The translations under genes and the position numbers were made by a program. This document shows, piece after piece, positions 967 through 54,827 of a stretch of DNA of 64,000 bases (position 1 is its first letter; the number at the start of each line of letters is the position of its first letter). Source of the DNA: Macrostomum lignano (taxonomy: Eukaryota); assembly GCA_002269645.1 (NCBI GenBank), contig NIVC01000319.1, forward strand, positions 558,001 to 622,000. The letters run 5' to 3'. Below the pieces are notes generated by a model. The model saw nothing but the letters and a program-made list of their open reading frames with translations, did no database searches and was not told the origin of the DNA.

Positions 967-1004
967 CTGTGGGAATCAGAATCGTGACGAATAGAAGCAA
1001 GGCT

Positions 1005-8600: not shown

Positions 8601-10783
8601 TGCGTCTCCACCTGGGGTGGGTTAGAGGAGACAGCGGTTTGAACACTTTGAAAGCGACTGAGCACACTGATCTCTTCCAATAAGCACTGAGCACACTGAT
8701 CTCTTCCAATAAGCACTGAGCACACTGATCTCTTCCAATAAGCACTGAGCACACTGATCTCTTCCAATAAGCACTGAGCACACTGATCTCTTCCAATAAG
8801 CACTGAGCACACTGATCTCTTCCAATAAGCACTGAGCACACTGATCTCTTCCAATAAGCACTGAGCACACTGATCTCTTCCAATAAGCGCCTGAGCACAC
8901 TGATCTCTTCCAATAAGCACTGAGCACACTGATCTCTTCCAATAAGCGTCAGAGCACACTGATCTCTTCCAATAAGCGCCTGAGCACACTGATCTCTTCC
9001 AATAAGGGTCTGAGCACACTGATCTCTTCCAATAAGCGTCTGAGCACACTGATCTCTTTCAATAAGGGTCTGAGCACACTGATCTCTTCCAATAAGCGTC
9101 TGAGCACACTGATCTCTTCCAATAAGCGTCTGAGCACACTGATCTCTTCCAATAAGCGTCTGAGCACACTGATCTCTTCCAATAAGCGCCTGAGCACACT
9201 GATCTCTTCCAATAAGCGTATGAGCACACTGATCACTACCGATCACTCTCGATAAGCACTGAGCACACTGAACACTCCCGATAAGCACTGAGCACACGCA
9301 TCGCACCTGGTCCCTTTTGTTCCTCCAGCTGTCGGACAGAGACTGCAGGACAGACGCGAACCCGGGCCGGCCGAAGTACCTGTTCTCAGGCGGAAAGTAG
9401 GTGCCGCCAAAGATAGGCCGCTTGTCCGGGGTCAGCCAGACGGACAGGGGCCAGCCACCGCCGACTCCCAGGGCCAGCACGAAGTTCATGTACACCCGGT
9501 CCACGTCCGGCCGCTCCTCGCGGTCCAACTGCGGGAATGGAGGCGCAGATTTTAGTTGGGCATAAGCATTATTGATGGCGTATTTCAGACGTGACGGGAT
9601 TTAGAGGCTGGAGAATTTAGATAAGGAATTCAGGGGATTAGGGAGTTCGGGGAAGGGACAGGGAGGATTTATCTGAAGCTTTTATGGGATGGGGAATTTA
9701 GAGGCTAGTGGTTATCCAAAGGATGGGGAATTTAGAAGCTAGGGGTATGCAAGGGATGGGGAATTTAGAGGCTGGTGGTTATGCAAAGGATGGGGAATTT
9801 AGAGGCTGGTAGTTATGCAAGGGGTGGAGAATTTAGAAGCTAGGGGTATGCAAGGGATGGGGAGTTTAGAAGCTAGGGGTATGCAAGGGATGGGGAATTT
9901 AGAGGCTGGTGGTTATGCAAGGGATGGGGAATTTAGAAGCTAGGGGTATGCAAGGGATGGGGAATTTAGAAGATAGGGGTATGCAAGAGATGGGGAATTT
10001 AGAAGCTAGGGGTATGCAAGGGATGGGGAATTTAGAAGCTAGGGGTATGCAAGGGATGGAGAATTTAGAAGCTAGGGGTATGCAAGGGATGGGGAATTTA
10101 GAAGCTAGGGGTATGCAAGGGATGGGGAATTTAGAAGCTAGGGGTATGCAAAGGATGGGGAGTTTAGAAGCTAGGGGTATGCAAGGGATGGGGAATTTAG
10201 AAGCTAGGGGTATGCAAAGGATGGGGAATTTAGAAGCTAGGGGTATGCAAGGGATGGGGAATTTAGAGGCTGTTGGTTATGCAAAGGATGGGGAATTTAG
10301 AGGCTGGTAGTTATGCAAGGGGTGGAGAATTTAGAAGCTAGGGGTATGCAAGGGATGGGGAATTTAGAAGCTAGGGGTATGCAAGGGATGGGGAATTTAG
10401 AAGCTAGGGGTATGCAAAGGATGGGGAATTTAGAAGCTAGGGGTATGCAAGGGATGGGGAATTTAGATATATGTAGATCAGCATACTCCAACCCAGCAGC
10501 TCACCTTGATGCTGACAAAATTGTCATTGAGTAGCTTGGCAATGTCGGCATTCTGAAAGGACTCCCTGTGCATGACGTGGCACCAGTGGCAGGTGGAGTA
10601 GCCAATGCTCAGGAACACCAGCTGGTCCCTGGCCTTGGCCAGCGCGAACGCTTCGTCCCCCCAGGGCTGCCAGTGGACCGGATCGTTGGCGTGCTGGGCC
10701 AGGTAAGGCGACCGGGACAGGTGCAGGCGGTTGCTGGCCTGACTGCTGCTGCTTCTAGAGGACTGGGCCGCTGCCTGAGCCAT
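5654..10783 (-). CDS. SPATA20: SPATA20/YyaL-like protein (thioredoxin-like domain plus six-hairpin glycosidase-like domain), 6 exons
   Basis: Exons 10783-10505, 9528-9307, 8611-7922, 7487-7260, 6859-6494 and about 6160-5654 (last acceptor uncertain, 6167 or 6160), with GT-AG boundaries. Motifs: NRL...[127 protein letters not shown]. Confidence 0.93.
6185..6455. repeat. 26-bp minisatellite in SPATA20 intron 5
   Basis: cttggttcttggggaggctgctgagt, about 10 copies. Confidence 0.9.
6890..7200. repeat. About 21-bp degenerate minisatellite in SPATA20 intron 4
   Basis: tatacgttgctaagggacacc-like units. Confidence 0.85.
7550..7910. repeat. 28-bp minisatellite in SPATA20 intron 3
   Basis: agcaactgaggatctgggaggctggccc, about 13 copies. 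Confidence 0.9.
8655..9295. repeat. 29-bp minisatellite in SPATA20 intron 2
   Basis: gcactgagcacactgatctcttccaataa, about 20 copies. Confidence 0.95.
9680..10465. repeat. 33-bp minisatellite in SPATA20 intron 1
   Basis: ggggaatttagaagctaggggtatgcaagggat, more than 20 copies. Confidence 0.95.
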
Positions 10784-14948: not shown

Positions 14949-17776
14949 CTAAGACTTGCCCGCCTTCCACACCCGGTGCAGGCGGGACTTGTCGTCAAAC
15001 AGGGAGCGGATCATCATCACCTGGATGCCGGACACGAACAGCATCACCACCAGCTGGAAGATGGACCAGGTGCTCACCCGGGCATTGTTCGCGTCCATCA
15101 TCATGCGATCGCGGGCCTCGTTGTTGCGGCTCTTGCTCAGCAAGTAGATGGTGCGCAGCAGGTGGTCCTCCACTTTGTCCGTGGATTTCTGCGGCGGGGG
15201 GGGGGTTATAGCTATTCGAAACAGCTGATGGAGTACTCACATCCAGCTACTGTAATTACATGTACAGCAATTTACAAACAAACACACCAATGTACATACA
15301 CCAATGCACACACACACCAATGTACAGACACCAGTGTACATACACCAATGTACGCAAATCAATGTACATACACCAATGCACACACACCAATGTACAGACA
15401 CCAGTGTACATACACCAATGTACATACACCAATGTACATACACCAATGTACGCAAATAAATGTACATACACCAATGTTGTAAATCAATGTACATACACTA
15501 AGTACACACAACAATGTACATACACCAATGTACACACAACAATGTACACGCACTAATGTACACACACCAATGTACACACAACAATGTACACACAACAATG
15601 TACACGCACTAATGTACACACACCAATGTACACACAACAATGTACACACAGCAATGTACACACATACCAGTGTAAGTACACCAATGTACACACAGCAATG
15701 TACACACATACCAGTGTAAGTACACCAATTTACACACACCCATGTACACACATACCAGTGTAAGTACACCAATATACACACACCAATATACATACACAAA
15801 TGTACACACACCAATGTACATACAACAATTTACACACACAAATGTACATACACCAATATGCATACACCAATGTACACCAATTTGGCAGCCACTCACGTAA
15901 AACTCCTCCCAGGAAAGCTCCATCTCGCGGAGGCTGGTCCGCAGTCCCTCGGACAGCTGATCGGCGCCAGGCCGGAGGCCTTCGCGTCCCTGTTCGACAT
16001 CTATGTTAAAGTACACGAGCTTGTCGTGCCAGGAAGAGTACCGGTTGTCCAGGCAGATCATGTAGGCCGGCAGGCGCATGTCGGCAGTCGATTTGGCCGG
16101 GTCGAATGCAAAACTCGCCTCGCCGTAGGCTTTGCCGCGCCGATCGAACGCCAGTTTGCCGCCTGGCGAATTGATGAAGACGTCAATGTCCAGACTGCCG
16201 CCGCTTGTCACCTGGGCGAGTGTTGGAATGTACAGGGCAGGGTCGGCTTGGTTATCGCAGCTTACAACGGTTCTAATGCATTAAAACGCCCACGCAAAAC
16301 TACACGGCCTTAAAGTGCGCACGTCTACACAACATCTACGAGAAATATATAAAGCACACACCCGTGCAAACCTAAATAATATTAGAGTACACATGACAGA
16401 CAGGCCTGCAGGGACTTAAAGTACACACGACTAGGCAATTATGCATGGCCTTACAGTTACACATGTCCAGGAAGTTTAAGTAGCACTGAAATACACACAC
16501 CCACGCAACCAACACAGCCTTAGAGTACACACGCCCACGCAAACCTGCACGGCCTTAGAGTACACACACCCACGCAAACCTGCACGGCCTTAGAGTACAC
16601 ACGCCCACGCAAACCTGCACGGCCTTAGAGTACACACGCCCAAGCAAACCTGCACGGCCTTAGAGTACACACACCCACGCAAACCTGCACGGCCTTAGAG
16701 TACACACGCCCACGCAAACCTGCACGGCCTTAGAGTACACACACCCACGCAAACCTGCACGGCCTTAGAGTACACACGCCCACGCAAACCTGCACGGCCT
16801 TAGAGTACACACGCCCAAGCAAACCTGCACGGCCTTAGAGTACACACGCCCAAACAAACCTGCACGGCCTTAGAGTACACACGCCCACGCAAACCTGCAA
16901 GCCCTTCGAGCTAGTACACAAGCCTACCCAAAACTTAGCTGCAAAATACACAAACACAAACAATTTAGGCCACAAATACATGTAATCCAATCTTCTCACC
17001 TGATACTCAAAGGTGAAGTTGCTAGATGCCTTATGATAAAAGCACTGCTTCCCCCGGCTGGGCAGGCGGTACACAAACGAGATGGACCGCATGTCGAATT
17101 CGTTAGGCTCCGATGGCAGCAGCACAGAGGGCACCCGCTTGCCTCCTTGATGGCCATCGTCCGGCCTGTCGCGGGAATCCCGCGGCGGCGGTGGCTGCCG
17201 ATGATGGGTAGAAACGGATTCTTGTGTCTCCGGGTGAGGTGGCTGATGATGCTCGGGTGGAGGCTGGTACTGCTGCTGCTGCTGCTGCTCTGGAGGCTGT
17301 TGGTGGACAGGCGGTGGCTGTTGCTGGACAGGCGGCTGCTGTTGGTGGACAGGCGGCTGCTGCTGGTGGGCAGGCGGTGGCTGCTGGTGGACAGGTGGCT
17401 GCTGGTGGGCAGGCGGTGGTTGCTGCTGGACAGGCGGCTGCTGCTGGTGGACAGGTGGTGGCTGCTGGTGGACAGGCGGCTGCTGCTGGTGGACAGGCGG
17501 CTGCTGGTGGACAGGCGGTGGCTGTTGGTGGACAGGCGGCTGCTGCTGGTGGACAGGCAGTGGCTGTTGGTAGTCAGGCGGGGGCTGTTGATGGGCAGGT
17601 GGAGGCTGATTATGCTCGGGCGGAGGCTGGTGATGCTGAGTTGGTGGGGGCTGTTGCGCTGCAGCCTGCTCACTAGATGGAGGCACAGCCTGAGGAGGCT
17701 GCTGAGCGATGCAGCAAGCAGTCAGCAGCAGCAGCAGCGCCGCAGCCTCAAGCAGCAGGAACTTCAGTCGAGCCAT
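14949..17776 (-). CDS. p24/TMED (emp24/gp25L) cargo receptor, paralog A, gamma-like, with Q/P/H-rich N-terminal insert; 3 exons
   Basis: Exons 17776-17000, 16211-15897 and 15188-14949, all phase 0 GT-AG. Signal peptide, then QQPPPVH repeats, GOLD domain (LPSRGKQCFY...FEYQV..GG.LDIDVFI.SP.G...YMICLDNRYSSWHDKLVYF), coiled coil (EARDR), TM (WSIFQLVVMLFVSGIQVMMIRSLF) and a short tail. Confidence 0.9.
15270..15880. repeat. Degenerate tgtacac/accaa repeat in TMED-A intron 2
   Basis: caccaatgtacata/cacac units. Confidence 0.85.
16500..16900. repeat. 35-bp minisatellite in TMED-A intron 1
   Basis: acacgcccacgcaaacctgcacggccttagagtac, about 11 copies. Confidence 0.92.
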
Positions 17777-17864
17777 TAAAATGACAGCATAAAAGATAAC
17801 AGATAATAAGCTTATTAATCCACTATAGCAAAACTAGTTGTCTGTCGGTGTGTGATTAAGCTGT

Positions 17865-18660: not shown

Positions 18661-20878
18661 TCATCCAATAAGGAACGAGCCGCGGACTCGCCAGACCCGA
18701 TGCAGCACGGACTTCTCATCGAACAGGGAGCGGATCATCAGCACCTGCAGGCCGGACACGCCCAGCATGACCGCCAGCTGCAGGGCGGACCAGCGGCTCA
18801 CCCGGGCCGCGCTGTCCTCCATAGCCAGCCGGTCGCGGGTCTCGTCGACACGGAACTCCCGCTGGATGCTGGCGCTGCGATGCAGATTGTCCTCCACGGC
18901 CCACGTCAGCGTCTGGGGATGGAGGGGCGGTGGTGATCGGGGACCTCAGATCTTCATGTACTATTCTCAGTCTATGGAAATCTCAACTCTAGAAATCTAA
19001 ACCCTGGAAATCTCAACCCTGGAAATCTCAACTCTAGAAATCTCAACCCTGGAAATCTCAACCCTTGAAATCTCAACCCTTGAAATCTCAACCCTTGAAA
19101 TCTCAACCCTTGAAATCTCAACCTTGGAAATCTCAACCCAGGAAATCTCAACTCTAGAAATTTCAACCCTGGACTTCTTAACCCTGGACTTCTTAACCCT
19201 GGAAATCTCAACCCTGGAAATCTCAACCCTGGAAATCTCAATTTAGGAAATCTCAACTCTAGAAATCTCAACCCTGGAATTCTTAACCCTGGAAATTTCA
19301 ACCCTGGAAATCTCAACCCTGAAAATCTCAACCCTGGAAATCTCAACTCTAGAAATCTCAACCCTGGAAATCTCAACCGTGAAAATCTCCACCTTGGAAA
19401 TCTCAATGTTAGAAATCTTAGCCCTGAATTCTCAACCTTAGAAATCTCAACACGAGTCAACATTGTAAATCATTCAAATAATTCAATTCTGGAAATCTTA
19501 ACTATCGAAATTTTAACCTCGGAATTCTCACCTTAATCCTGCCATGAGATATTCATAGCAGGATTAGTGTTGGAAGTGTCAGCCTTCAAACTTTTTTGTC
19601 AGTCTATGGAACCCCCCCAACCTTGAGAATCTCAGTATTGAACGAATTTTCATCTGATTTTCAGCTGCGGACGTCTCAAACTTGGAAATCTATGCTCTAT
19701 GGAGATATTGACATTGAACTTCTCATTTGAGCACTAGTTACGGAAATCTTAGTCTTGGGATATTTATCTGTTCCAGCTATGGAAACTTCAGGTTTTCAAG
19801 TCCAATCTGATGACCAGTCTGAGGCACTGAGCTGTCAAGGATCAGGGAAACCAACCAGAAAGTGCGACCAGCTGATGTCCAAGCGCTTCAGCTCAGCAGT
19901 CATGGCCTCGGGCAGAGGCTCCAGCATCTCGCCGCTCCCTCCGCTGACGTTGATGCGCTTGCGCTGCAGCTCGATCCTGAAGTCCACAACTTTATCGTAC
20001 CAGCTGGAGTGCCGGTTGTCCAGGCACACCGTGTGCACCGGCGACTCGCCGCCCGGGACCGCCGACTCCGGAGCGGCCGGCGCCAAGAAGCCGCCCTGGC
20101 GCCGTTCCCGACTCTCGTAGGCCACGCGGCCGCCCGGGCCGACAATGTACACATCGATGTCCAGCCGGCCGCCGTACAGAACTCGAAACTCGAACTGGAA
20201 CGACTTCGCTGTTCGATGATGAAAGCACTGACGGCCACGGCTGGGGAGAACAAAGACAAAGGAGGAGTCCACGCCGTCGAAGGAGTCGCTGGACTCGGCT
20301 GACGGCAGTAGGAAGCTGGGAATCCGGCGTGGCGGTGGCGGCCCACGAGGCGGCGGCGGCGGCCCCCGCGGAGGTGGCGGCCGCATTCGCTGGCCATCGG
20401 GACCCGGCTGCGGCGAACGACCGTGCGTTGCCTGAATCTGAGCGCTGGGCACTGGCGGAGACTGGACGCTTTTTGATGGCGGGGCCTGACCACTTGATGG
20501 CGGGTCCTGACCGCTTGATGGCGGGGCCTGACCGCTTGATGGCGCAGTCTGACCGCTTGATTGCGCAGTCTGACCGCTTGATGGCGGGGCCTGACTGTTC
20601 GATGGCGGGACCTGACCGTTTGATGGTGGGGCCTGACCGCTTGATGGCGGGGCCTGACCGCTTGATGGCGGGGCCTGACCGCTTGATGGCGGGGCCTGAC
20701 CGCTTGATGGCGGGGCCTGACTGTTCGATGGCGGGACCTGACCGCTTGATGGCGGGGCCTGACCGCTTGATGGCGGGGCCTGACCGCTTGATTGACCGCT
20801 GACCGCCTGACCGCAGACAACTAAGCAGACGCAAAGGCAGGCAAGCCACGCACGAAGTTGGGCGGCACCTCGGACCAT
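18661..20878 (-). CDS. p24/TMED cargo receptor, paralog B, with GQAPPSS heptad repeats; 2 exons
   Basis: Exons 20878-19856 and 18912-18661, phase 0 GT-AG. Signal peptide, about 16 GQAPPSS-type units, GOLD domain (LPSRGRQCFH...FEFRVLYGGRLDIDVYIVGPGG...VCLDNRHSSWYDKVVDF), ETRDR coil and TM (WSALQLAVMLGVSGLQVLMIRSLF). Confidence 0.9.
18975..19450. repeat. 15-bp minisatellite in the TMED-B intron
   Basis: ggaaatctcaaccct, about 30 copies. Confidence 0.92.
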
Positions 20879-21257
20879 AATTGAACTGGCAGCTGACAGT
20901 AGTTTAGCAGTAGTATGATTCGCAAGTGAAACGCATGCATTAATTTTAGTTTCAAATATGAATTTTTTACCAATTTGCATTGTACTGTATTTGGATAGTG
21001 CTTTAATATCAAGGCAAAGTAACAAGAGGAAATTTTATATAAAAAAATAATTCAAATTGTGCTTTATTTATTAAGGTTTTGATAGAAAAGTTAGCAAGCA
21101 ATTTAAATGTTGCTATTTTAAATGCTGGAACAATACAAACGTTCGAATCGGAAATGCGACTTAATTTCAAGCCGGCACTAAATAGCTGAAATGCCCTAAA
21201 AGATAAAAAAACTATAGGCAGATGAGCCATTCACTAATTCTTAAAACGCGTACTTAC

Positions 21258-24500: not shown

Positions 24501-26143
24501 ATATTCTCAGATGTCAAATCTCTTGGTGAGATTCTCAGATGTCAAATCTCTTGGTGAGATTTTCAGATGTCAAATCTCTTGGTGAGATTCTCAGATGTCA
24601 ATCTTGGTGAGATTCTCAGAGGTCAAATCTCTGGGTGAGATTTCTAGAGGTCAAATCTCTGGGTGATATTCCCAAAGGCCAAGTCTCTGGGTGAGATTCC
24701 CAGAGAGAAAATCACTGGGTGAGATTCTCAGGTGTCAAATCTCTTGGTGAGATTCTCAGATGTCAAATCTTTTGGTGAGATTCCTAGAGCTCAAATCTCC
24801 GAGTCAGATTCCCAGACGTCAAATCTCTGGGAATCTGGGAATTTCAGGGTCATTGCTCAGTGCTCAGTCCCACCCGACTCTCAAGCTGGGTTCACAGCAG
24901 CTTAAACTCCAACTCGAACCTGAAGTTGCGCAGCACCCGCTTGGCCCCGTAGAGAAACGCGTCGCCATCGTTGGTGATGACGGCGTCCACAACTCCGCGG
25001 TTGTTGAGCAGCGCGGCCAGACTCTCCGCCTCGCCAGGGCTCTCCACATGAGGTACGCCGAGCAGGTCGAGCAGGCGGCAGCAGTCGCCGCGCAACAGGC
25101 GGCGAAATCTGGCCCGCTTGCGGATCCGCTCCGGGTCCACCGGCCGCTCTGCGACTGTGGGATGAGCGATTTAAACTGTCAGTAACTGCCTGTCACTCTC
25201 CCCTACACAGCCTGTCACTCCTGCCGCTCTCCCTACACAGCCTGCCACTGCCTGTCGCTCTCCCCTACACCGCCTGCCACTCTCTCCTACACAGCCTGCC
25301 ACTCTCCCCTACACCGCCTGCCACTCTCTCCTACACAGCCTGCCACTCTCCCCTACACAGCCTGCCACTCTCCCCTACACAGCCTGCCACTCTTCCCTAC
25401 ACAGCCTGCCACTCTCCCCTACACAGCCTGCCACTCTCCCCTACACAGCCTGCCACTCTCCCCTACACAGCCTGCCACTCTCCCCTACACAGCCTGCCAC
25501 TCTCCCCTACACAGCCTGCCACTCTACCCTACACAGCCTGCCACTACCCTACACAGCCTGCCACTCTCCCCTACACAGCCTGCCACTGCCTGCCGCTCTC
25601 CCCTACACAGCCTGTCACTCTCCCCTACACAGCCTGCCACTCTCCCCTACACAGCCTGCCATTCTACCCTACACAGCCTGCCACTCTCCTACACAGCCTG
25701 CCACTGCCTGTCGCTCTACCCTACACAGCCTGCCACTCTCCCCTACACAGCCTGCCACTCTCCCCTACACAGCCTGTCACTCTCCCCTACACAGCCTGTC
25801 ACTGCCTGTCGCTCTCCCACATCCCAATCAGCTCACCTGGCTTAGCCCCTTTGCCAGCCATCTGCTGGGATCTGGCAGTCATAGTCGCCACCTTCAATAC
25901 GGGCGCTTCGCCGTCCAAAACAAAGAGCGGCCTGACGCCCAGCTTGAGCAGGTGCAGGGTTCTGAACAGCAGGTTGCGCAGATGCAACCGACCAGGAATG
26001 GCGCAGGCGGCCTCCCGCTGGGTCTGCATGTCGTCAACAACCCAGATGGCCAGGTCGATGGCGATTCGGAGGCCGCGCAGCTCCTCAAGCGGGGTGTGCT
26101 GCGCCGTTGGCTGAATGATGGACCAGAGGCCGTGGACGCCCAT
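21573..26143 (-). CDS. GEN1: GEN1 Holliday-junction resolvase (Rad2/XPG family); 4 exons
   Basis: Exons 26143-25837, 25154-24920, 23846-23279 and 22622-21573, with consistent phases (1, 2, 0). Motifs: MGVHGLW, IAIDLAIW, HLRNLLFR, FVLDGEAP, GEAESLAA, TNDGDAFLYGA, LLLGCDY, and a chromodomain-like ILAERIRAGVPCYEV. The acidic catalytic residues are intact. Confidence 0.93.
22860..23215. repeat. 15-bp minisatellite in GEN1 intron 3
   Basis: cataggatagaacac units. Confidence 0.9.
23970..24800. repeat. About 28-bp minisatellite in GEN1 intron 2
   Basis: ggtgagattctcagatgtcaaatctctt units with higher-order variation. Confidence 0.9.
25185..25815. repeat. 22-bp minisatellite in GEN1 intron 1
   Basis: cctacacagcctgccactctcc units. 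Confidence 0.92.
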
Positions 26144-26682
26144 TTTTCTAATTAGTCAAGGAATAACCTGTAACACGTTGAGCTTATGTAAGTTACCAGT
26201 TAGTATATTAGTATTTGTTTGCTATAAATTTTTTAGCAGACTTTAGGCAAGACAATATTCAAGTCCAGTAAATATGATGTTCAGAGCATCAGAGGAGTTG
26301 GCTGCATTTTTAAAGACTCATGAATGGAAATTTTAACAGAATGTCTTTCAGGAGCAGAGCATCTTAGCAATAAATGCATTTTTATTCTTGTGCCACGACC
26401 CCAGCTTCAATTCTGTACCTATGGGAGCAAATGGGAATCTGTGCATATGGCATCTTGAATAGATGAAGAAATCAATCAAACTTTTTTGTTTATGGCCCTC
26501 CCCATATGCCTTTGCTTTATTTTATATATGCAAGAATTGAATCTTAAGAAAAAAAGCAGAACAAAGTGGACATAACTTGATCCACAATAACTACACTGCC
26601 TCTTTCCTTATGCTCAAGTCAGCTAAAATTTGAGATACAAATATATAAAATGTTCAAACAATTTTTCAAATTGATAAAAAGT

Positions 26683-29598: not shown

Positions 29599-30924
29599 TA
29601 GACAAAAAAATCAAAGGGAGGACCAAGCAAATTTTAGCCAAAAACAAAGCCATCCTGCCACCTGGACTGCCCATTCCCATGTATTTACCTTGCAGAATCC
29701 ACCCCCTCAACAAATTTCTGGTTGCACTAATGCATTATTGGCATAGGCTTAGCCATAGCTATAGGACCTGGGACCATGAGAATAAGCACTGCTATAATAA
29801 TATTGGAGCTATATAAATATGGTTAGAACTTAGAAACCCATTGTCTGACTCTTAGCCTTAGACTTATGTATACTCTTTACAAAAAGTATAAAAACTAAAC
29901 AAAGTTCAGCAAATTAATTTATATTTATAATAGAATAACATTAAATTAAAAAATAATGAAATCTAGACTAAATTAAAAATGCAGTTTATATTACATAACA
30001 CTAACAAGTTAACAACAAAAGTTAAGTAAATTAAGCCTCATTCTATACGGCTTATGCCTAGAATATGAGCCTTATTAGTTAGGCTTATTCCCTTCTAGTA
30101 GCCACTGACTAAGACGTGTGTACTGTAATCGTGTAATGTACATAAGGCCCTCCACCAATCCTGATTCCTGATACGGTAGCAAACTCAGCCCAACGATGCT
30201 TAACTTAGATCTTAGCGTCCCGACCTCAGAATTTTCTGTTTGAACCACGATACCGACTGACTTTCCAGGCTTGATTTCGAGCCTAACCATTTTAGCCACG
30301 CTGTCAATTACGGTCTACATCACATCAGTCAGGAGGCTGCGAATTAAAAATTGATGACGACTAGGCCGCTGAATTCGAAAATGTTTACACGATAAACTTG
30401 TGTATTATAACCAACTTTATTTGGAAGATTCTCGGGTTTTGTGAAAAAATCATTAGAAAGTATACCGTAAGTTCAATCATACGTTATTGTAAGCACTAAT
30501 TGAGCTTTTTTGTTTTTATCTCTGAATATAAAAATTTTTCATATTTTCATCAAAAGTACATACATCATGCAGAGCCTGCATTGCCAGCATGCTGTCAGAA
30601 GCATTTTGCTGCGTTGTTTTGTGCTTGGAGGTAGCAAAATATTGTGACACGGCTGACTCCAGACTAGCTCGCATTTATCAATCAATTTATCAGACAATCG
30701 TGCATTTAAAGATTGATTGGGGCGTAATAAAAACTACATGTAAACTGATCCTCTTTGCTTCTATGTTTTACCATAGACAGATGTTTTTTTCATTGCAAAC
30801 CTGAGTTCCCTAAAGAGGCTGATATGTCAAATTATTCCAGCTTTCTATAATTTTCAGAACGGTATATTGTAACAGTATTTTCTCAAGTTCTTTAAGATTT
30901 GACTTTGATACTGCAGGGACTAAA

Positions 30925-31225
30925 ATGAATTTCTACGTATACGCCATGATTATCGTTTTCATCGTTATGTTTTTTGGTAAGTAGCAGCTCAGCTTTCGAG
31001 TCTGTTAAGAGCCTTAATTAGGCTTTTTTCAGCTGCTTATCACCAAAGCTTTCTAGCTGCCTCCCCACCCCATCACTCACTCACTCATTCACTCACTCAC
31101 CTGTGCCCACCGCAGACTCTGGATCTGCCTGCAGCAGCTCCGAAAAATGCACAAAAACCGGGGGCTACTGCAGGAACTATGCAGACTGCTGCTCACAGCG
31201 GTGCAACGTGGGCAAATGCTGGTGA
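30925..31225 (+). CDS. Secreted 53-aa inhibitor-cystine-knot (conotoxin-like) peptide; 2 exons
   Basis: Exon 1 (30925-30976) encodes MNFYVYAMIIVFIVMFF plus one base, followed by the donor gtaagt. Acceptor cgcag, then exon 2 (31116-31225) gives DSGSACSSSEKCTKTGGYCRNYADCCSQRCNVGKCW*. Cys spacing is C-X6-C-X5-CC-X3-C-X4-C. An acceptor-like ctgcag lies 8 nt before the ATG. Confidence 0.85.
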
Positions 31226-34200
31226 AGTCAATTAATGAGGAGCTAGCAGCCCGTCTGAAGTTTTAATGCCCCTTTGTTTTCCCATCTCGTCGTTTGTTGC
31301 GGTTTGTTTTTTGCGATAATACAAAAAAATTTAGAGAATTACATCCGTGTGCAATGCAGTGGCTTCACGCTATAGATCTGATTCAAAAAAGCAAATGTGA
31401 TTAAGCTGTCCACACTTTATATACTTCCATGACAAACGCGAAATCAAGGACTTTCAAATAATTCAACACCAGATGCTAGCAGATTAAACTTTCTTTTATT
31501 CAACTTAGCATACAGCTGGCGCCTATATAGCTATTTGCATTTGAGCTGTTCTGCTCAACTACACTTCTAGTTGGTGTAGGCAAATGTTCTGTAATTATTT
31601 TCATGTGCTACACGTGTATATTGGGGTTCAACTCAAAATATGAGCGCTTTTGCAGCTTGAGGTTATGTACGTGTAGCTCGAGTTTTATGTGTGTAGCTTG
31701 ATCGGTACTGTGGAATTCCAAGGTCCTGTAACTTGAGGTTCTGTACGTGTACATGTGAACTGAGGTACGGATATGGAATATTAAGGAATAGTTGAATCCA
31801 TCAAAAATATCCATAATTTAGATAAAAAAATCAAGCAGATTTTGCAGTTGGCAGATTTGCAATTACATTTTCCACATCAAATGAAGAAATACATGCTGTC
31901 TGATGCGTCCTGCTCAAGACACAACAGACTTTTTGCTTATCAGTGTTGCAGCAACTCTGCGAGGATCGGGTCCGACTGTTGCTTCCAATCTCGCTCGAGC
32001 AGCCAGATCCAATGCTTCTAACGAGCTCAGGATTAGCTTCAGCTTCTTAGAGAAGCACGTCTTACAGAGACAGAGTCAGCTGTTTATCCAGCTCAAGTTG
32101 GTCATCAAAAAGATACTACCCAAGAAGCTGAGCACATTTGTGATGAAGATTTATCTAGCCAAGGCAATTGTTCAGTATGCTGCAGCGCCACATTAGGAAG
32201 CTGTGAGCAGCATCTGGGCGCTAGAGCCGTTGGTTGCAGTTCTAAAGGAATCTTGTAGCGCCCTTCATTGATCGATCGATCAAACCTTCTAGAAATCACA
32301 AATCCAAATGTTGCGATATTTCAATAAACTTCTCATTAAAATTCTAATTTCAAGCATTTATTATTGAATACTAATTGATTTATTATCTTAAACAGCATAG
32401 TCAATATAGCAGTAAAATTATCCGTAATTTATTTGCACTTTAAATTTGTTATACTGTAAGAAATATTTCTAGAAATTTCCGGAAAACCAAAATCATTTCT
32501 ACTCGTATAAATATACGGCAGGCGATCGAAAAACGGATCACTCTTTCCCATTTTCTTACTTCCTCCCGAATATGCCAATAAAACCAAAAGAGCCATCGCA
32601 TTTGCTCTGCATTTTCCTCAAAACTCTACAACTCTCGACCTGCTGCACAGCTTCCTAGGCGACAGTTCCGCCCACATTGTTTGTCTGCAAGCCGCACTTC
32701 TTCCTGCCTGGCGCTCCGCTGTTTCTCAAGAACGCTGGCACCGGAGCGGAGCCGGGGCTGACAAAGCAACGGCTACACAGAGAGATACTCGCAAGGACCA
32801 CTAGGAACACTTCGTTAATTACAGTCTAGTAGAGTGTACGAGCGCTCTTAGCAACCGTAGCACGGAGGCCGAGTACAAGCAGCTACTAGTAAACAGAGCG
32901 GGGTGCAGTTGTGTCTCCATGTCATGACTTTGCTCCAGCTGGAAAGGAGAGATAAAGCAAAACAGCTGCTCGAGGCTCAAAGCCGATTCCCGATAAAATC
33001 CGAAAATTCGTCGCTTACACGTGGTGTTTTTCTTTTAAACAAAGGAAACTAGTTTAAGTAGTCCCTGGTTGGACTTTGGATTTTCAGCTTTCGACGTCCC
33101 GAACTTGCTGCTGAAGCGTAAAAAGACAATTCCAGTCATCTACGCGAAGCTTCCGCAGCCTGCTGTGGAGCATGAGAGCCGAGCTGCTGGAAGCAACCTC
33201 TCATTAAAGTGAAAACTATTGGCCCACATAACAACAACAACAACAATAATGAAAATAATAGATTACACCTGCCACAATGGACAGAGATGCAACCGACAGC
33301 TCAGCCGCAGCAATTGTGCAGCGCATCTGAAGGCTGCGTACGCGGCTACCCAGTCCAAGGACTGGGAGGTCGCTTCACACCCTCAATTAACCCAGCTAAT
33401 GCAGGAATAACCCCCCCCCCACCAACAAAACTGACAAAAGAAGATTGCAGACAACTCGGATGTTGATGAGCACTTTGTGCAGTCATCGCACTGCTACTCA
33501 CTAATGCAGTTGCTGAGCTGCAAGAAGGCAAAGGAAGAGCTGATGGTCGGAGCTGGCGAGACAAAGCTGGACCGCGTATCTGCAGAAGTCAACTGGATTT
33601 GAGGTTTCTCTCGATGCAGCTCTTGATGCTGTGTAGCATTCTGTGAGGCCTGCACTGCTCAGTAGCTCCGACTTTCTGCTTACTATTCAATCAGTGTTCT
33701 CATCCTAATATTTTTCCAGGCGCGATGCCCAGGAACAAGATGACTTGGGTAACCTCACACCTGCAGGCACTTGGAGGCTCCTGCATCGGAGCATATTTAG
33801 TTTCATTTACATGTTGCTACTGCAGTAATTTAGCAAATTGAACATAATAGTCCCAGAATTTGTTTGCACGATGAGAGTTGAGCTGCGTCGCTTTTCGGAT
33901 GGACAGCCAGGAAATCGAACATTGCGAGGTGAGCAAACAAGACCACGCTAACAACCTTGTCACGGGTCCACTTTCACAAGCTCGCGACTTCACATCGTCG
34001 AAAAGTCTTGTAGGTCGCATTCATCGGCTTGAAAACGAAAAAATTCATAAACTCAAAAGCGATCAGCCGAATGATAATTTGCACTATTGTTTCACATTGG
34101 CTTTGCAAAACTGATTTGAATCTGAATTTTTTCGGAGGGATCATTCCAGCAGAAATAACTCGCACTCAAAGAGAGTACTACTCCCAGAAATTGTGCAGTT

Positions 34201-34312: not shown

Positions 34313-34697
34313 AGGATTAAACAGAGGGGTTAAACACAGGGGTTAAACACAGGGGTTAAACACAGGGGTTAAACACAGGGGTTAAAAACAGGGGTAAAAC
34401 ACAGGGGTTAAACACAGGGGTTAAAAACAGGGGTAAAACACAGGGTAAAACACAGGGGTTAAACACAGGGGTAAAACACAGGGGTTAAACACAGGGGTTA
34501 AACAGAGGGATTAAACAGAAGGGTTAAACACAGGGGTTAAAAACAGGGGTTAAACACAGGGGTTAAACACAGGGGTTAAACAGAAGGGTTAAACACAGGG
34601 ATTAAACAGAAGGGTTAAACACAGGGGTTAAAAACAGGGGTTAAACACAGGGGTTAAACACAGGGGTTAACACACAGGGGTTAAAAACCGGGGTTAA
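34313..34697. repeat. 13-bp minisatellite (acacaggggttaa) ending at the piggyBac TTAA
   Basis: About 29 copies, directly visible. Confidence 0.92.
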
Positions 34698-35766: not shown

Positions 35767-37063
35767 TCATCTCAATAAGTGGAAGAAGCTGCGGATCTCA
35801 GCCTCGCTCATCGTATCGTTTATGACGGCCACCGCCTGCACCGTGCCGTTCAACACTCGTGAGTCGTCATGTTTAAATCCGAGTCTCAGGCAGGTGCAGC
35901 TGGGAATGCTTGATTCAGAATATGAGGCCGCCACAGTCACCTGCCCTGGCGGCACGAAGCCTCCATTAGAGAAAAATTTTCGGCTCGAGAGAGACGCCGA
36001 CGTCAGGCCGACTTCCACGAACGAATTCGGGTCAAACGAGTTCGTTTCCGGTGCGGTTTGGTAGCCAGAATAGTTCAAAGCAACCCTGACGCTAAACAGG
36101 CCTCTTAAATGTAGCTTGCCGTCCCAGAAGGCGGCTCCAGGCACCTTGGTGGTGCAGTCGTAGCTCTCAAGAATTGCTGCTTCCTTCATCTCCCTCTTAA
36201 GCCTGACGAGCCACGTGAGTTCCTGCTGCAGGTTCGCGAACTCCACGTTCTCCAGCCACATCTTGGACGACACTCCGTCGAGCTTGGCTCTCTCGCTGCT
36301 CCACTCCACATTCTCCGACATCCACTGCTGCGTCTGGCCGCACACCAAGTTGCTCCTGCTGGCGTCCGCATCGTCGCTCATCACCCAGGCGGCCCTCAGC
36401 TTCGAGCCCACATCCAGCATGAGCTTCCTGCTCAAGGTGAGGAACTTGGCGGCTCTGGCATTGGCGAATGCGGCACAGCGGCGGGGCTGCGAGCTCTCTG
36501 CAGCAGCGAGTCCATCGATGAGGTGGCACACTGCGGTGTACTAGAAGAGCGAGCACTGGCGAGTGTCCGAGTCGAACTGGGCCACCTGCAGACCGCTTGA
36601 GCCAGCCTCGTAAAGGCACTCGATGATGCCTCTCGGATTCTGAGTCGCCCCCACTGCCAGATTCTCAGCCAGGCACTGCCGTAACTCAATTTTACTCCAG
36701 CTGCCGGAGCACTGCTCAATCTGAACCCAACAGACAAGAGCAAGCAGAGAGAGTTCTGAAATTTTGCAACGGGTTTGATTTTATTTTTATTTTGCTTTGA
36801 ATTGGCTTTGTCTTTTCAGCTGTATAAATCTTCGGCGGGTAACAAATATGGAGCCGCTGATGTTGCTGAAACTGTATTGACAGCAGATAGCCTACTTCAT
36901 GCACTTAGATCACAGTTACTGATTTGTACATAGAATATGCACATCCATATCCACATTCATATGGCTGTCACTCACATTCACCAGACAGATTGGCTCACTC
37001 ATCAGTCTCACTTAACCAGCAAAGTCTAAACAGATAAAACTTACTTAACAGTTTGCTGAGCAT
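35767..37063 (-). pseudogene. Secreted protein gene (PAN/apple-like N-terminus, LamG/ConA-like C-terminal motif) with one in-frame TAG
   Basis: Exon 1 37063-37045 (MLSKLL plus one base, donor gtaagt); acceptor tttcag; exon 2 36755-35767. Gives the signal peptide MLSKLLKLSLLALVCWVQIEQCSG, then ECLYEAG...AQFDSDTRQCSLF*YTAVC, ending GTVQAVAVINDTMSEAEIRSFFHLLR*. The stop at 36543-36541 is codon 78. Domain names are inferred by eye. Confidence 0.6.
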
Positions 37064-39480: not shown

Positions 39481-39544
39481 CAACCGAAAATACTCTATGG
39501 TATAATGAGCATAGATAAAATTCTGCTTGGGTTTAATGATCTTC

Positions 39545-40160
39545 AGCAGATGTCAATCAGATCCTGTCAGATTCCAATCAGATCTTGTCAGATTCCAATC
39601 AGATCCTGTCAGATTCCAATCAGATCCTGTCAGATTCCAATCAGATCCTGTCAGATTCCAATCAGATCTTGTCAGATTCCAATCAGATCTTGTCAGATTC
39701 CAATCAGATCTTGTCAGATTCCAATCAGATCTTGTCAGATTCCAATCAGATCTTGTCAGATTCCAATCAGATCCTGTCAGATTCCAATCAGATCTTGTCA
39801 GCTTCCAATCAGATCTTGTCAGATTCCAATCAGATTCCAATCAGCTCCTGTCAGATTCCAATCAGATCTTGTCAGATTCCAATCAGATTCCAATCAGATC
39901 TTGTCAGCTTCCAATCAGATCTTGTCAGCTTCCAATCAGATCTTGTCAAATTCCAATCAGATCTTGTCAGATTCCAATCAGATCTTGTCAGATTCCAATC
40001 AAATCTTGTCAGCTTCCAATCAGATCTTGTCAAATTCCAATCAGATCTTGTCAAATTCCAATCAGATCTTGTCAGATTCTAATCAGATCTTGTCAGATTC
40101 TAATCAGATCTTGTCAGATTCCAATCAGATCTTGTCAGCTTCCAACCAGATCTTGTCAGA
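39545..40160. repeat. 21-bp minisatellite (cagattccaatcagatcttgt)
   Basis: About 29 copies. Confidence 0.95.
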
Positions 40161-40178
40161 TACCAAGCAGGTCCAACA

Positions 40179-40404
40179 TCAGTTCGGCCAGTCGCCGCGA
40201 GTCGCATCGGCGCCATCAACGGGCAGCTTGTTGGCGCGGAACTCGGCCTGAGTGTGGCTGGAGTAGCACAGTTTGCAGGACATGACGCTGATGGACATGC
40301 GGCAAGCGTAGCAGATGACGCGGTCCCGGGAGCAGGGCAGGCGGTACCAGGCGTGCCGGTTTGGGTTTGCCAGTATGGGTTTATGCAACTCTGCCGCACT
40401 TGCA
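40179..40404 (-). CDS. Possible orphan terminal exon with a Cys/His zinc-binding-like motif
   Basis: After the acceptor tctccgcag: ASAAELHKPILANPNRHAWYRLPCSRDRVICYACRMSISVMSCKLCYSSHTQAEF...WPN*, in GC3-rich codons. No phase-compatible upstream exon found. Confidence 0.35.
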
Positions 40405-48701: not shown

Positions 48702-51700
48702 TCAGACAGCGGAGAAGCTCGCCAAGCCCCAGGCCAACGCCGTCGTGGCTGCCGCAGCTGTCAGCGTCAGCAGTGCAGCGGGTGAGCAGCGGCGAGCATC
48801 GGCTGCGGGGAGCCGCTTGGAGCTCCGCATCCGCATGGGCTCGTGCACCGAGCCTTCGCCGCGGCGGCCCTCGGCTCCGCCCTGCTCGTCCGGCTCCTTC
48901 GGCAGCCACAGGTCCGGCAGCTGCGGCTGCTGCGGCGGCGGCTGCGTCGGCAGTTGCGGCCGGCGTGTTGGCCACTGAGGCGGCCGCTGAGTCAAAGGCG
49001 GGAACTCCGGCACCTGCGGGGGCCACTCCGGCTGCTGCGGCGGCTGGACAGGCGGCAGCGGAGGCTCCACGCCACCGCTGGGCAGGCCGCCAATGTCCGG
49101 CGTCGGGCGCGGCGGCCACACCGGCGGCCACTCCGGCGGCGTCGGCCGCTGCGGTCGAACTGGCGGCCACTCCGGCGGCGTCGGGCGGGCAGGCAGCGGC
49201 GACTCTTCGTCGCCGGAGCCGACGGGTCCAGGCGGCTGCCGCGTTGACTCCGGCTGTTGCGGCGGCAGCGGCGGGAGCGGCGGCCTCTTCGTACTGCCCA
49301 GCCGATCGTCGGGCTCCTCGTCAGGCTGGCCGACGCCGGAGCCGCCAGTGTCGATGGGGCCGAGCTGCTGGTCGTGGTTGACTTGGTGGTGGTTGTCGGC
49401 GTTGTCGTTGTCGTCGTTGTGGTCGGAGCTGTGGTAGTTTTGGTTGTTGTGGTGGTGGTTGTCGTTGTCGTGCTGCTGCTGGTGGTGGTGGTGGGCGGCT
49501 CGGTGGGCAGCCAGAGCCGCTCGGTGGTTCGCTCGGTGTCGGGCAGCGCGGGAACCGCGGGTGGCTCGGCATCGCCGGAGCTGATGGGGCGGCTGGAGCG
49601 GCTGGGGCTGACCGAGGGCGGATGGTCGCCGCTGCCGATTCCGCCAGTCGGTCGCGACGATGACGGCGCAGGCGGCTGCGGCCACGGGGTCCAGCGCTCC
49701 AGCGGTGGGGGCGGCGGCCGAGTTGGGGCGAGCGTAGACAGCGCCAGCACCGTCGTATCGGCAGCCGCCGGCCTCCATCCAGCTGCGCCAGGACTGGATG
49801 ACGAGGCCGGAGGAGGAGCCGCGCCGCTGCCCGAGGCACCGCCGAGGACACGCACTGTCGAAGCGCCGGCGGCAGACATCGAGTTCGAGGGCGGCGGGCC
49901 CGGCAAGCCTGAGGACGCCGCGAAGTCGCCACGCTGCATCGGCAGGAGCCTAGCGAGCGTCCGCTCCCGATCGGTGGCCTCCCGGTACTCCCGGTAGCCC
50001 ACGCCTCCCCTGGGCAGGCTGGTCGCGAGTTCGATTGCCGTGCGCAGCTCAGCCTGACGAGTTGCGACCGGCTCGGCTGGGCGGGACAGCGCCGACTCCG
50101 GCACAGACACCTCCGGGTTGGCCACCAGGTCGGGGCCGCTGGTGCCGCGCCTGGACCGCTGGTAGCTGTTGGGATTTCAGTGACGGGGCATTGAGTACTC
50201 GTGAATGCTAATGAAAAAGCTAATAACTTAACATCAGTACACCAGCACTTGAGTACACAAGCACCCGATGTACACCAGCACCCATGAGTACACAAGCACC
50301 CATGAGTACACCAACACCCATGAGTACACCAGCACCAATGTGTACACCAGCACCCAATGTACACCAGCACCCAATGTACACAAGCACCCATGAGTACACC
50401 AACACCCATGAGTACACCAGCACCAATGTGTACACCAGCACCCAATGTACACCAGCACCCAATGTACACTAGCACCCAATGTACACCAGCACCCAATTTA
50501 CACCAGCACCAATGTACACCAGCACCCAATGTACACCAGCACCCAATTTACACCAGCACCAATGTACACCAGCACCCAATGTACACCAGCACCCAATGTA
50601 CACCAGCACCCAATGTACACCAGCACCCAATGTACACCAGCACCCAATGTACACCAGCACCCAATGTACACCAGCACCCAATGTACACCAGCACCCGATG
50701 TACAACAACACCCAATGTACACCAGCACCCGATGTACACCAGCACCCATCCCTCGCACAGCGGGCGCACCTGGCTACAGCGGTGCCATTCCAGCAGGCAT
50801 CAGGCCGGGGCTCCGCCTGGCAGTCCTTCTGCACCAGCTGCTCCCAGTTGAAGAAGCCGCGCAGCGCTCGAAGCTCCGCCCTGACCTGGCCGACCAGTTC
50901 GGTGAGGCGGGCCTGCCTGCTGCTGTCATCCGCTGGCGATTCCACAGTCCTCGCATCCGTAGGCCCGCCTGCGCCAGTCGCCGATGAGGCACCAATCATG
51001 GCGCCGGTTTTCAGACGCGGAGTCCCGCAGGCGCCGGTGATCCGTGCCTGCAGCTGGTCCTTGCGCTCCTGCATCTCCATGATTCCGACGCTTATGCGTA
51101 AGCCGAGCTGCCGCAACGCCTGCAGAACAGATGCGGGTTTGAGGGAAAATAAATCTCAGCAATAAATGAAAGCATTGTTCTCATGCAGTTTGGAATTTCC
51201 CCATAGCCACAGTATATCCAACAGTAAGCGGACATGCAGTACTAATTAATGGTTTTGTATGACTGAGTAGGTGAGTGAGTGAGTGAATGAGTGAATGAAT
51301 GAATCGGTGATTGAATTGGTGAAGGAGTGAAAAAGTGAAGGAGTGAATCGGTAAGTGAATAAGTGGAGGAGTGAAGGAGTGAATCGGTGAGTAAATGAGT
51401 GAATCGGTGAGTAAATGAGTGAATCGGTGAGTGAATGAGTGAATCAGTGAGTGAATCGATGACGGTGAGTGAATGAGTGAATCGGTGACGGTGAGTGAAT
51501 GAGGAATTGGTAAGTAAATCAGTGAAGGAGTAAATCAGTGTGAATGAGTGAATCGATGTGAATGAGTGAATCAGTGTGAATGAGTGAATCAGTGTGAATG
51601 AGTGAATCAGTGTGAATGAGTGAATCAGTGGGAATGAGTGAATCAGCGTGAATGAGTGATTTAGCGTGAATGAGATTTAGCGTGAATAAGTGAAACGGTG

Positions 51701-52727
51701 AGTGAATGAGTGAATCAGTGGGAACGAGTGAATCAGCGTGAATGAGTGATTTAGCGTGAATAGGTGAAACGGTGAGTGAATGAGTGAGTGGCTGCAGCGC
51801 TCACCATGCGCATGCTGCTAGCGCCGTCAACCAGTCCGGCCATTCTCTCCAGCTTGGCCAGCAGCTGGTCGAAGGGCGCCGCCAGCGGTGACAGGCCGGC
51901 CAGGCAGCCGGCGGCCACATTGGCGCACAGATTGTAGCAGGGATTCGCCGTGGCGACGCCGTCACACCAGGCGCAGTAGTGGGCGCGCATTCTGGCGCGC
52001 AGGCAGTCGGCGCTCAGCTGCACCCCGTGGCCGGAGGTGACGCCGCGCAGAGTCTCGGCCAGACTGGCCAGGCCCAGCAGGAATCGGCGCCCGGCAACAA
52101 AAGCTTTGAGCAGCTCGGCGCCAACCTGGTCTGGCGTTGAGCCGAGCGGTCTGAGGGCGGCAAATTGGCGCTTAGCGCAGTCCAGATAGCGCCGGTCCAG
52201 CTCGTAGTTGTTCATGGTGAGGGCGAACACCCGCACCGCGATGGCGTCGAACAGGTCGCTGGCCACGCCCGCCACCGGCCCGGAGGCGGGATCGCCGCGG
52301 ACGTAGGCGGCCAGCTGGTCGAAGAAGGCGGTGAAGGGCGCCTTGTTGGCCAGGTAGGAGTAGCCGTAGATGCTCTTGAGGCTGCTGTCCAGCTCGCGCC
52401 TGGAGGCCTCGATCAGCTGCAGCTGCAGGCGCTGCAACTCGAACATAAGCGAGTCCAGCCTGGCGGCCCTCGGCGACGTCAGCTCGCGCACTCGGCGGCG
52501 CAGCTCGTCGCGCGATGTTGCCAGCAGGGTGTCCTCCATGGCCCGGGAGCAGCAGGTGGCCCGCTGCTGGCAGACGGACAGGTGAGCCCCAGAGAACAGC
52601 CGGTTTACCTGCATCACGTCGAGGCCTTTGCTGGCGTAGGCGGCCGTCACGGTGCCGCAGTCGGGGCAGCCGAGGAGGCGGCCAGCAGCGGCAGCAGCAG
52701 AAGCAGAAGCAGATTCTGCAACATCAT
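48702..52727 (-). CDS. Glypican (GPI-anchored heparan sulfate proteoglycan) with long Thr/Pro stalk; 3 exons, two apparent 1-nt deletions
   Basis: Exons 52727-51805, 51119-50770 and 50165-48702. Signal peptide, then C..V..AY..KG, HLSVC...TCCS..ME, LDRRYLDC, RRFLLGL, C.RA.MR..YCAWCDG...NPCYNLCANVAAGCLA, ISVGIMEMQE, CWNGT, NPEV, several Ser-Gly sites and a hydrophobic GPI-type tail. The frame is restored by adding one base at the gggg runs 52663-52666 and 49356-49359. Confidence 0.88.
50225..50745. repeat. 17-bp minisatellite in glypican intron 2
   Basis: tgtacaccagcacccaa units. Confidence 0.9.
51260..51790. repeat. (GAGT/GAAT)-based repeat in glypican intron 1
   Basis: gagtgaatcggtgagtgaat-like units. 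Confidence 0.88.
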
Positions 52728-53589
52728 TTCACTGCCGGAGTGCGGAGCTGCTGACAGTCAGACTTTATAGAGGCCGGCTTCAAGTCGATGCCGGCTGAAA
52801 GACGACAATTTTTGCTGGGGCTGAGAATTTCTGCTTCAAGTTAAAGAAGAGAGAAAAGTTTTCAAGCTTGTGTTTGGCACTATAGACTCCTATTGCTTAG
52901 TTGACCAAATTCAATTGGGCAGGAAGGGTATTGGAAAGTGTGCTTCTGGCCAACAGCTCTCCTAACCTCAGGCAGATACACAATCAAGCTCCTAGAAGGA
53001 AGGAAGCTATGTGCTAATGTTAAGGAATAAAATTCACCGGCAATGCAGATTCCGGAAACGACAGTCCAGTCAGCGAGTCTGCAAGTCGGGATCAAGTTGA
53101 GGAAAAATTTCCCAACAGCACAGCTGTGTCCAGTTAGCGAGCGGCTTCGCTAACAGTTGTGCGTTAAAGCTTTAAGAGGCAGGGGAGGGGGGCAGTGGCA
53201 GCACAGAGAGCACCCAACCAGCCGAGGGCAGAGATAGGGGGGGGCGGTCATATATGGCTGGTTGTCTGGGCCGCAGCTTATGACTAAGACGCCGGGTGGG
53301 GGGGAGGGAGAAAGCCTGAGGGTCGATGCCGGAGACTCCGCAGATTGGGTGATGGAGAGCAGGGAGGGAGGCTGTGCAGAGGGAAAGGAAAACGAAGGTT
53401 AAAGCCGTGCAAGCCCAGTCAACCAAGGAGATCTTCAGGTAGAATTCGGAGTGGCAACTCGTCCCTAAGCACGGGTCAGAATGAAGAAGCATCGGTCGCT
53501 TGTTTCGCTGGCTGGTCCCTGATAGCCAATGCCAATCGCCAAAATGGACTCGACCACAAAAGTAATCGCAAAATCCCGATCTGATCCCA

Positions 53590-54265: not shown

Positions 54266-54827
54266 CCCTATCTGAGGAAAGGAGCTGCTAGTCCAGAATC
54301 TATTCCTAGATCTCCTTGGACCCACCGACTGTCTCCCCCACCCCAAAGAACGGAGACTGCAGCTGTGCAGTGCAAACAGGGTGGGAAGCTGCTGGAGACG
54401 GGATTTTTACTGCAGCCGCTAATAACGCAAGCTTAGTGCGATGCCCAAACCCCAACCCCGCACCCAATTTCAAGAATTCCAAAAGGCGCATCATCGAACG
54501 AAGCCATCAAGGCAGCGGCGAGGATGCCCGTGGACAGCCAGGGCCTCCTTCCTACTGGCTGAATTTACGTTTCTATGCGGATAAAGGAAGGGGGGTTCCC
54601 TGCAAAGGCAAATCTGATTGCGGAGTTCGAGTCCGGCCTGCCTGAGGGGTTGTCTGCCTCCGGGGAAGGCGGCCAAATGAAATCAGAGGGCAGCCGGGCG
54701 AATTGGGAAAACGTTTTCACTTCGCGCTTTGTGGCCAGCCAGGCAGGCAATAAAAAAGTTTTCCTTAGACTGTGAGAGATTCAATTCAGACTACTGTCAA
54801 AAGTAGACGAAAAAATTCGTAAAATCG

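Follow-up and report, generated by a model that had tools for sequence, protein, structure and literature searches.

Does a short plus-strand locus (30925-31225) in flatworm DNA encode a secreted cystine-knot peptide, or does it carry only a cysteine pattern of the sort that chance can supply? We addressed this question within a window of 64 kb, meaning the whole stretch of DNA that was analysed. A sequence-only reading had proposed here a cryptic two-exon gene for an inhibitor cystine knot (ICK, or knottin) peptide, and the leader, acceptor, codon score, profile match and predicted fold described below all support that proposal. We put at about three in four the probability that the locus is a genuine, previously uncalled and functional two-exon gene for the 53-residue precursor of a predicted secreted knottin.

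The proposed splice and its translation were reproduced exactly. Joining the donor at 30977 (G/GTAAGT, the slash marking the exon end) to the acceptor CCGCAG, whose last base is 31115, gives a two-exon ORF at 30925-31225 (+) with the spliced 53-aa product MNFYVYAMIIVFIVMFFDSGSACSSSEKCTKTGGYCRNYADCCSQRCNVGKCW, followed by a stop codon. The parts of the gene model and its candidate flanking signals are as follows.

30846-30851, plus strand: TATAAT, a possible TATA-like promoter element about 75 nt 5' of the ATG; a weak match, no commoner than chance.
30925-30976, plus strand: coding part of exon 1; ATG at 30925-30927 with A at -3; 17 codons and one nucleotide (the first base of codon 18), phase 1.
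30977-31115, plus strand: intron of 139 nt, phase 1; GTAAGT...CTCAC...CCGCAG.
31116-31225, plus strand: coding part of exon 2; c-region DSGSA(C), SSSEK spacer, knottin domain, CW and the stop codon TGA at 31223-31225.
31148-31219, plus strand: knottin core from Cys29 to Cys52, C-TKTGGY-C-RNYAD-CC-SQR-C-NVGK-C, located by motif scan.
31318-31323, plus strand: AATACA, a possible variant poly(A) signal 93 nt 3' of the stop; a weak match from a pattern search.
31483-31488, plus strand: ATTAAA, an alternative poly(A) signal; likewise a weak pattern match.

A second TATAT lies near 30863, and TATAAT is also the hexamer returned by a consensus scan for promoters and terminators, which is of bacterial type and uninformative for a eukaryote. 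Exon 2 has a GC content of 0.55, against 0.37-0.42 in its flanks. The spacing C-X6-C-X5-CC-X3-C-X4-C that had been assigned to exon 2 holds for the core, but the count of six cysteines had overlooked a seventh: Cys23, upstream of the core, brings the product to seven, an unusual, odd count. Absence from the ORF track, also claimed, is true at ordinary length cut-offs only; at a threshold of 20 aa, exon 2 is listed as a 40-aa ORF with a GTG start (31103-31225).

Codons 1-17 of exon 1 encode MNFYVYAMIIVFIVMFF, the hydrophobic core of a putative signal peptide. The leader has a 15-residue hydrophobic run, with a mean Kyte-Doolittle hydropathy of 2.69 over residues 3-17, and no basic n-region; small residues occupy positions -3 and -1 for candidate cleavage after either Ala22 or Cys23, as read from the sequence. 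We searched both strands for further leaders of this kind, defined as an ATG and 12 or more codons after it that include a hydrophobic stretch 11 or more residues long, with GTRAGT at the end. The real window (128 kb of strand) holds one, at 30925, compared with 0.03 per shuffled window.

The cysteine pattern by itself is weak evidence. Dinucleotide shuffles made in 1-kb blocks contain on average 0.25 loose ICK cysteine motifs per window, with at least one in 22% of shuffled windows; of the five such motifs in the real window, four are artefacts of simple repeats. The combination is much rarer: a leader with GTRAGT lying within 140 nt 5' of such a motif, on the same strand and in compatible phase, has a joint expectation of about 1e-5 per window.

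The residues between the cysteines carry further information. A knottin HMM was trained on 22 domains of dipteran origin, leaving the query out, and run against all 1,733 fragments of 20 aa or more in the six-frame translation of the whole window. It matched this ORF alone (26.4 bits, E 4.7e-7), the next fragment scoring E 0.19; together with the motif scan, it revealed no second knottin-like ORF within the 64-kb window. The isolated peptide scored 30.6 bits against the same HMM, while 2,000 permutations in which the non-Cys residues were shuffled and the cysteines held fixed scored 5.2 +/- 4.9, with a maximum of 28.9. None equalled the real score, so the fit to the family extends beyond the cysteines to the loop residues. 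The fitting loop positions include the Gly before the second Cys, the adjacent Tyr, the Asp before the CC pair and the Ser after it.

The choice of splice acceptor was evaluated in terms of both reading frame and codon usage. Ten AG acceptors lie between 31000 and 31138, and 31115 alone restores the knottin frame. Five others lead to products truncated at 19-28 aa, and the remaining four (31011, 31032, 31056 and, counted with them, 31134 and 31137 inside exon 2) lead to run-through in a frame free of cysteines. The knottin frame opens no earlier than 31022 and lacks an ATG of its own ahead of the domain; its translation therefore needs the 30976/31116 junction or another upstream phase-1 exon. 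As a codon reference we took 987 codons from exons of the window confirmed by Pfam or by homologues, in which GC3 is 0.84 and 23 of 24 Cys codons are TGC (TGC:TGT 23:1). By this measure the knottin frame of exon 2 is the best of six, with a codon log-likelihood of +13.8 bits, a GC3 of 0.69 and TGC at all seven of its cysteines; exon 1 alone is slightly negative (-4.7 bits). Junctions of neighbouring genes, derived from homology boundaries and not from transcripts, provide a second comparison. The inferred donors are CAG/GTGAGA, CAG/GTGCGA and ATG/GTGAGC, and at the TMED and SUGCT genes the inferred acceptors are rich in C and not in T (CGCCCAG, CCCACAG), resembling CCACCGCAG at the knottin acceptor. 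A microsatellite-like element, CACTCACTCATTCACTCAC, lies within the knottin intron at 31073-31100 (+) and again at 51275-51302 (-), just past the inferred glypican donor; it looks like a simple repeat that recurs in introns of this genome.

Homology searches placed the peptide near one group of secreted proteins. When 1.84 billion representatives were searched exhaustively with phmmer, 12 proteins came up at E ≤ 1e-3; seven of them are secreted multi-knottin proteins with three to six tandem C-X6-C-X5-CC-X3-C-X(4 or 6)-C units each. Four of these are named dipteran proteins (Uranotaenia, Anopheles, Simulium), some labelled 'phenoloxidase inhibitor-like' by their depositors, and three are unnamed Logan and MetaClust records of the same architecture. 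The best matches are the dipteran phenoloxidase inhibitor-like (POI-like) secreted proteins, at E 2e-6 to 6e-4. Four of the other five matches were scanned; these non-insect proteins carry MopE metal-binding repeats, sushi or RTX sequences, and we set them aside as a compositional, cysteine-rich resemblance. In five of the dipteran POI-like precursors (P0002, P0004, P0005, P0008 and P0012), NRFG or SRFG recurs in the linkers between the knottin domains, with acidic residues or glycine after it. This has the look of a conserved processing or amidation-type site, and the precursors may be cut into single knottins.

The search against knottin and conotoxin families that had been suggested as a check gave a divided outcome: the dipteran knottin HMM recognized the peptide at the E-value given above, but the Pfam thresholds for Conotoxin, Conotoxin_I2 and UPF0506 were missed. 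Conotoxin_I2 (PF17557) scored 15.0 bits against a threshold of 27 (E 0.028) and Conotoxin (PF02950) 12.8 bits against 25.1 (E 0.24), and UPF0506 (PF11703) did not match the product at E up to 10. All four multi-knottin proteins that we scanned against Pfam reach the Conotoxin threshold, and the dipteran relatives of the product also match UPF0506.

A single-sequence search of the PDB with the product gave weak matches. When the query was combined with the 22 dipteran domains (profile A1), 6px7 ranked first at E 7e-11, followed by omega-atracotoxin-Hv1a, the beetle antifungal knottin Alo-3, scytotoxins, kappa- and omega-conotoxins and nemertide alpha-1. The sequence of 6px7 is that of U-Asilidin1-Dg12, from assassin-fly venom (Table 1, PMC6266666), and, according to the same paper, Asilidin-1 peptides are most closely related to dipteran proteins that are not venom components (PMC6266666). 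In a word-indexed search of 5.8 billion clusters, the 53-aa product had no candidate homologue; profile A2 in a search of this type retrieved a mosquito fragment (P0030) only. The 40-aa exon-2 ORF has no exact match on record, and neither an orthologue nor a paralogue was found in the protein searches, in a related M. lignano locus (L001) or in the window.

Two high-GC and apparently bacterial metagenome contigs, L002 at 6-1454 (+) and L003 at 46-290 (+), were the sole finds of a metagenome scan; they contain tandem C-x6-C-x5-CC-x3-C-x4-C units. They encode a secreted-looking repeat protein (...CTPVGASCGGNGDCCSQRCNAGTCGC...) with 58% identity to residues 29-52 of the flatworm peptide, a match biased by the seeding of the search on DCCSQRCN. 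We set these contigs aside as evidence on the flatworm gene, the resemblance being one of knottin-like framework only.

Structure prediction, another suggested check, yielded a knottin-like model. AlphaFold2 run on alignment A1 gave a mean pLDDT of 79, rising to 89-92 over the knottin core (residues 11-36 of the model), with the first ten residues, including Cys23, poorly defined. Foldseek matched the model to nine PDB entries, eight of them ICK toxins and the ninth a sea-anemone peptide; the best superpose at an rmsd of 0.5-1.2 Å over 24-26 residues, with TM scores of 0.6-0.8. In BFVD, the top five matches are models of baculovirus conotoxin-like (Ctl) proteins (rmsd 0.8-0.9 Å, 32%-41% identity, probability 0.92-1.0), the best of them at 0.8 Å over 27-28 residues with 37%-41% identity and a probability of 0.95-1.0. 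The small size of the domain keeps the Foldseek E-values weak (0.05-0.16 at best). The peptide has six core cysteines in C-C-CC-C-C order, with loops in the ICK range, and a predicted fold like that of solved knottins.

The surroundings of the gene bear on how it should be interpreted. The window consists of GC-rich exons (GC3 about 0.84) set in AT-rich spacers (28%-40% GC), and the knottin gene lies alone on the plus strand in an AT-rich, gene-poor gap of 9.6 kb between two minus-strand genes. It is head-to-head with a GEN1-type gene at a distance of 4.8 kb and tail-to-tail, at about 4.5 kb, with a gene at 35770-36540. The neighbouring features are as follows.

49-975, minus strand: CoA-transferase III (SUGCT-type) exon.
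About 5.6-9.6 kb, minus strand: DUF255/SPATA20-type gene.
About 15.6-17.8 kb and 19.8-21.0 kb, minus strand: two emp24/GOLD genes.
25802-26155, minus strand: first exon of an XPG/GEN1-type gene.
35770-36540, minus strand: single-exon gene with a weak concanavalin-A-like/Laminin_G_3 match.
51754-52728, minus strand: glypican exon.

The sole database relative of the gene at 35770-36540 (-) is the Macrostomum lignano hypothetical protein BOX15_Mlig033890g1, with 77% amino acid and 85.6% nucleotide identity. This match identifies the source as a flatworm of Macrostomum type, and the stretch as distinct from the annotated M. lignano copy. At locus L001, where this relative occupies 10001-10648, we found no knottin and no flanking synteny; its neighbours there are Metallophos and SHIP-type genes. 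The tandem emp24/GOLD paralogues at 16838-17833 (-) and 19838-21034 (-) have long low-complexity N-terminal extensions ahead of the GOLD domain, made up of (Q/H)QPPP repeats in one paralogue and of SSGQAPP repeats in its partner; only one of the pair has its GOLD domain interrupted by an intron.

Long tandem arrays occur at 34317-34697, 3459-4490, 25008-26152, 39481-40282 and 54784-55762, with 29 copies of the 13-mer TTAAACACAGGGG as one example. They create long spurious ORFs in several frames, and much of the ORF track of the window is repeat artefact. The sequence-only reading had placed the gene among transposon debris, a setting that the data do not bear out: none of ten ORFs at 25.8-35.4 kb has a transposon protein domain, and the knottin locus is single-copy in the window except for the 28-nt microsatellite, within AT-rich intergenic DNA with tandem repeats.

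Explanations other than an intact, functional gene can be weighed against these observations. One is that the ORF is a product of chance, with a fortuitous cysteine pattern and no gene behind it. Loose patterns do arise readily in shuffled DNA, the other four instances in the window are simple repeats, and short cysteine-rich queries are prone to compositional matches such as those to MopE, sushi and RTX proteins. The leader and donor standing in phase 5' of the motif, the score of an insect-only HMM that no Cys-fixed permutation reached and a codon bias that agrees with a gene all argue against this, making chance very improbable. A gene that has recently decayed or fallen silent, intact-looking yet a lineage-specific pseudogene in the making, would account for a singleton without paralogue or orthologue in the searches run, for its position in an AT-rich, gene-poor gap and for promoter and poly(A) signals that are weak matches. 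However, the ATG, donor, acceptor, six core cysteines, consensus Gly and Asp positions and stop are all intact and the TGC preference is kept at every cysteine, and we regard such a relic as improbable.

A different possibility is that the knottin exon is real and the gene model is not, the leader splicing to another acceptor, or exon 2 being joined to another upstream exon or to a trans-spliced leader. The T-rich acceptor TTTTTTCAG at 31032 has the stronger T-run and opens an uninterrupted 84-aa frame, albeit free of cysteines; the 56-nt intron that it implies is plausible for a flatworm, and spliced-leader trans-splicing occurs in Macrostomum. Codon usage speaks against that frame, which scores -19.8 bits (-11.0 for the extra segment) with a GC3 of 0.31, far from the 0.84 of reference exons, and its product crosses the microsatellite and has no family match. 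The inferred acceptors of neighbouring genes are C-rich as well, and the knottin frame, having no internal ATG, finds the only leader-type exon of the window 139 nt upstream in the right phase. A differently built gene is accordingly unlikely, and the two-exon model with acceptor 31115 remains our preferred reading.

Under the two-exon model, maturation might proceed as follows. The initiation codon and the hydrophobic part of an ER signal peptide would come from exon 1, and once the 139-nt phase-1 intron (GTAAGT...CAG) had been spliced out, this leader would continue in frame into exon 2. Genes for secreted peptides commonly carry a phase-1 intron where the signal-peptide core ends. Signal peptidase would then cut after Ala22 or Cys23, both of which fit the -3/-1 small-residue rule; cleavage after Cys23 would remove the odd seventh cysteine and leave exactly six. 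The resulting product of about 30 residues and net charge +3, SSSEK-C-X6-C-X5-CC-X3-C-X4-C-W, would fold oxidatively into a knot with presumed I-IV, II-V and III-VI pairing and be released as a protease-resistant ligand that binds an extracellular protein target.

What that target might be can be approached only by analogy. Our best guess, a tentative one, is that the peptide is a defence or antimicrobial-type effector. Reproductive (seminal-fluid) or endocrine roles would rank second, and inhibition of phenoloxidase/tyrosinase is a further alternative. A prey toxin seems the least likely role, as laboratory Macrostomum feed on diatoms. The models for this ranking are endogenous knottins of other invertebrates, among them the insect antimicrobial peptide Alo-3, the phenoloxidase inhibitor of the housefly and mussel CRP-I (PMC10138031).

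We also considered whether the peptide may be an orthologue-level relative of insect POI and Asilidin-1 knottins, a survivor of an ancient protostome family of endogenous knottins; we regard this reading as unlikely. Were it correct, venom knottins would have been recruited repeatedly from that ancient family, and the flatworm peptide might inhibit phenoloxidase/tyrosinase, the enzyme class that tans flatworm eggshells, or serve as a transferred reproductive effector.

Among known knottins, those of dipteran POI-like proteins and Asilidin-1 (U-Asilidin1-Dg12, 6px7) are the closest in sequence detail. They share with the flatworm peptide the framework C-X6-C-X5-CC-X3-C-X(4 or 6)-C and the loop residues C-x-K-x-G-x-Y-C-x4-D-CC-S-x2-C, with 29%-46% identity per domain, and several dipteran domains also have its short X4 last loop. 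Domain membership is indicated by the match to a profile built without the query, but the precursor architecture differs. The dipteran proteins are precursors of 185-425 aa with three to six tandem domains and linkers, many of them with NRFG, whereas the flatworm protein has a single domain behind its putative signal peptide, as well as an extra upstream Cys, and the phyla are very distant. The housefly POI has a DOPA-modified Tyr in its last loop, for which the flatworm NVGK has no counterpart.

Platyhelminth knottins (UPF0506/PF11703, the 'Trematoda' family of the KNOTTIN database and Schistocephalus solidus A0A183TDP7) come from the same phylum and are secreted, as is predicted for the product described here. 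The S. solidus protein is described as a platyhelminth-specific knottin assigned to UPF0506, and its second half has the spacing found here, C-x6-C-x5-CC-x3-C-x4-C (PMC8400842). The published platyhelminth motif is, however, a double knot with 12 Cys, while this peptide is a single knot, and the UPF0506-type proteins derive from parasitic Neodermata as opposed to a free-living macrostomid. Omega-conotoxins of the O-superfamily (PF02950), I2 conotoxins (PF17557) and omega-atracotoxin-Hv1a share the C-C-CC-C-C order and a superposable predicted fold; unlike conotoxins, the flatworm precursor has no long propeptide of the conotoxin type, its Pfam scores are sub-threshold and the organism is not venomous. 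Since the UPF0506 and Conotoxin thresholds were both missed, we file the peptide in neither family. Baculovirus Ctl-1 and Ctl-2, the top viral structural matches, are small secreted single-knot proteins, as the flatworm product would be, but they are encoded by viral genes, in contrast to the flatworm gene, and baculovirus Ctl genes are intronless.

The peptide adds to a very widespread class and involves no new mechanism or fold. Knottins are recorded from cone snails, spiders, scorpions, insects, horseshoe crabs, sponges, plants, fungi and viruses, with a 'Trematoda' family in the KNOTTIN database (PMC2238874), and they are known across many phyla, parasitic flatworms included (PMC2238874, PMC8400842). 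Our literature search found no link between Macrostomum and knottins or ICK peptides; if expressed, this would be the first knottin that we have found described for a free-living macrostomid flatworm, and a candidate effector that lends itself to study in a genus used as a transgenic model. It also illustrates how short, intron-split genes for secreted peptides escape both ORF-based and standard annotation. The likeness of its loops to those of dipteran POI and Asilidin-1 domains has a modest bearing on the debate over homology versus convergence among animal knottins.
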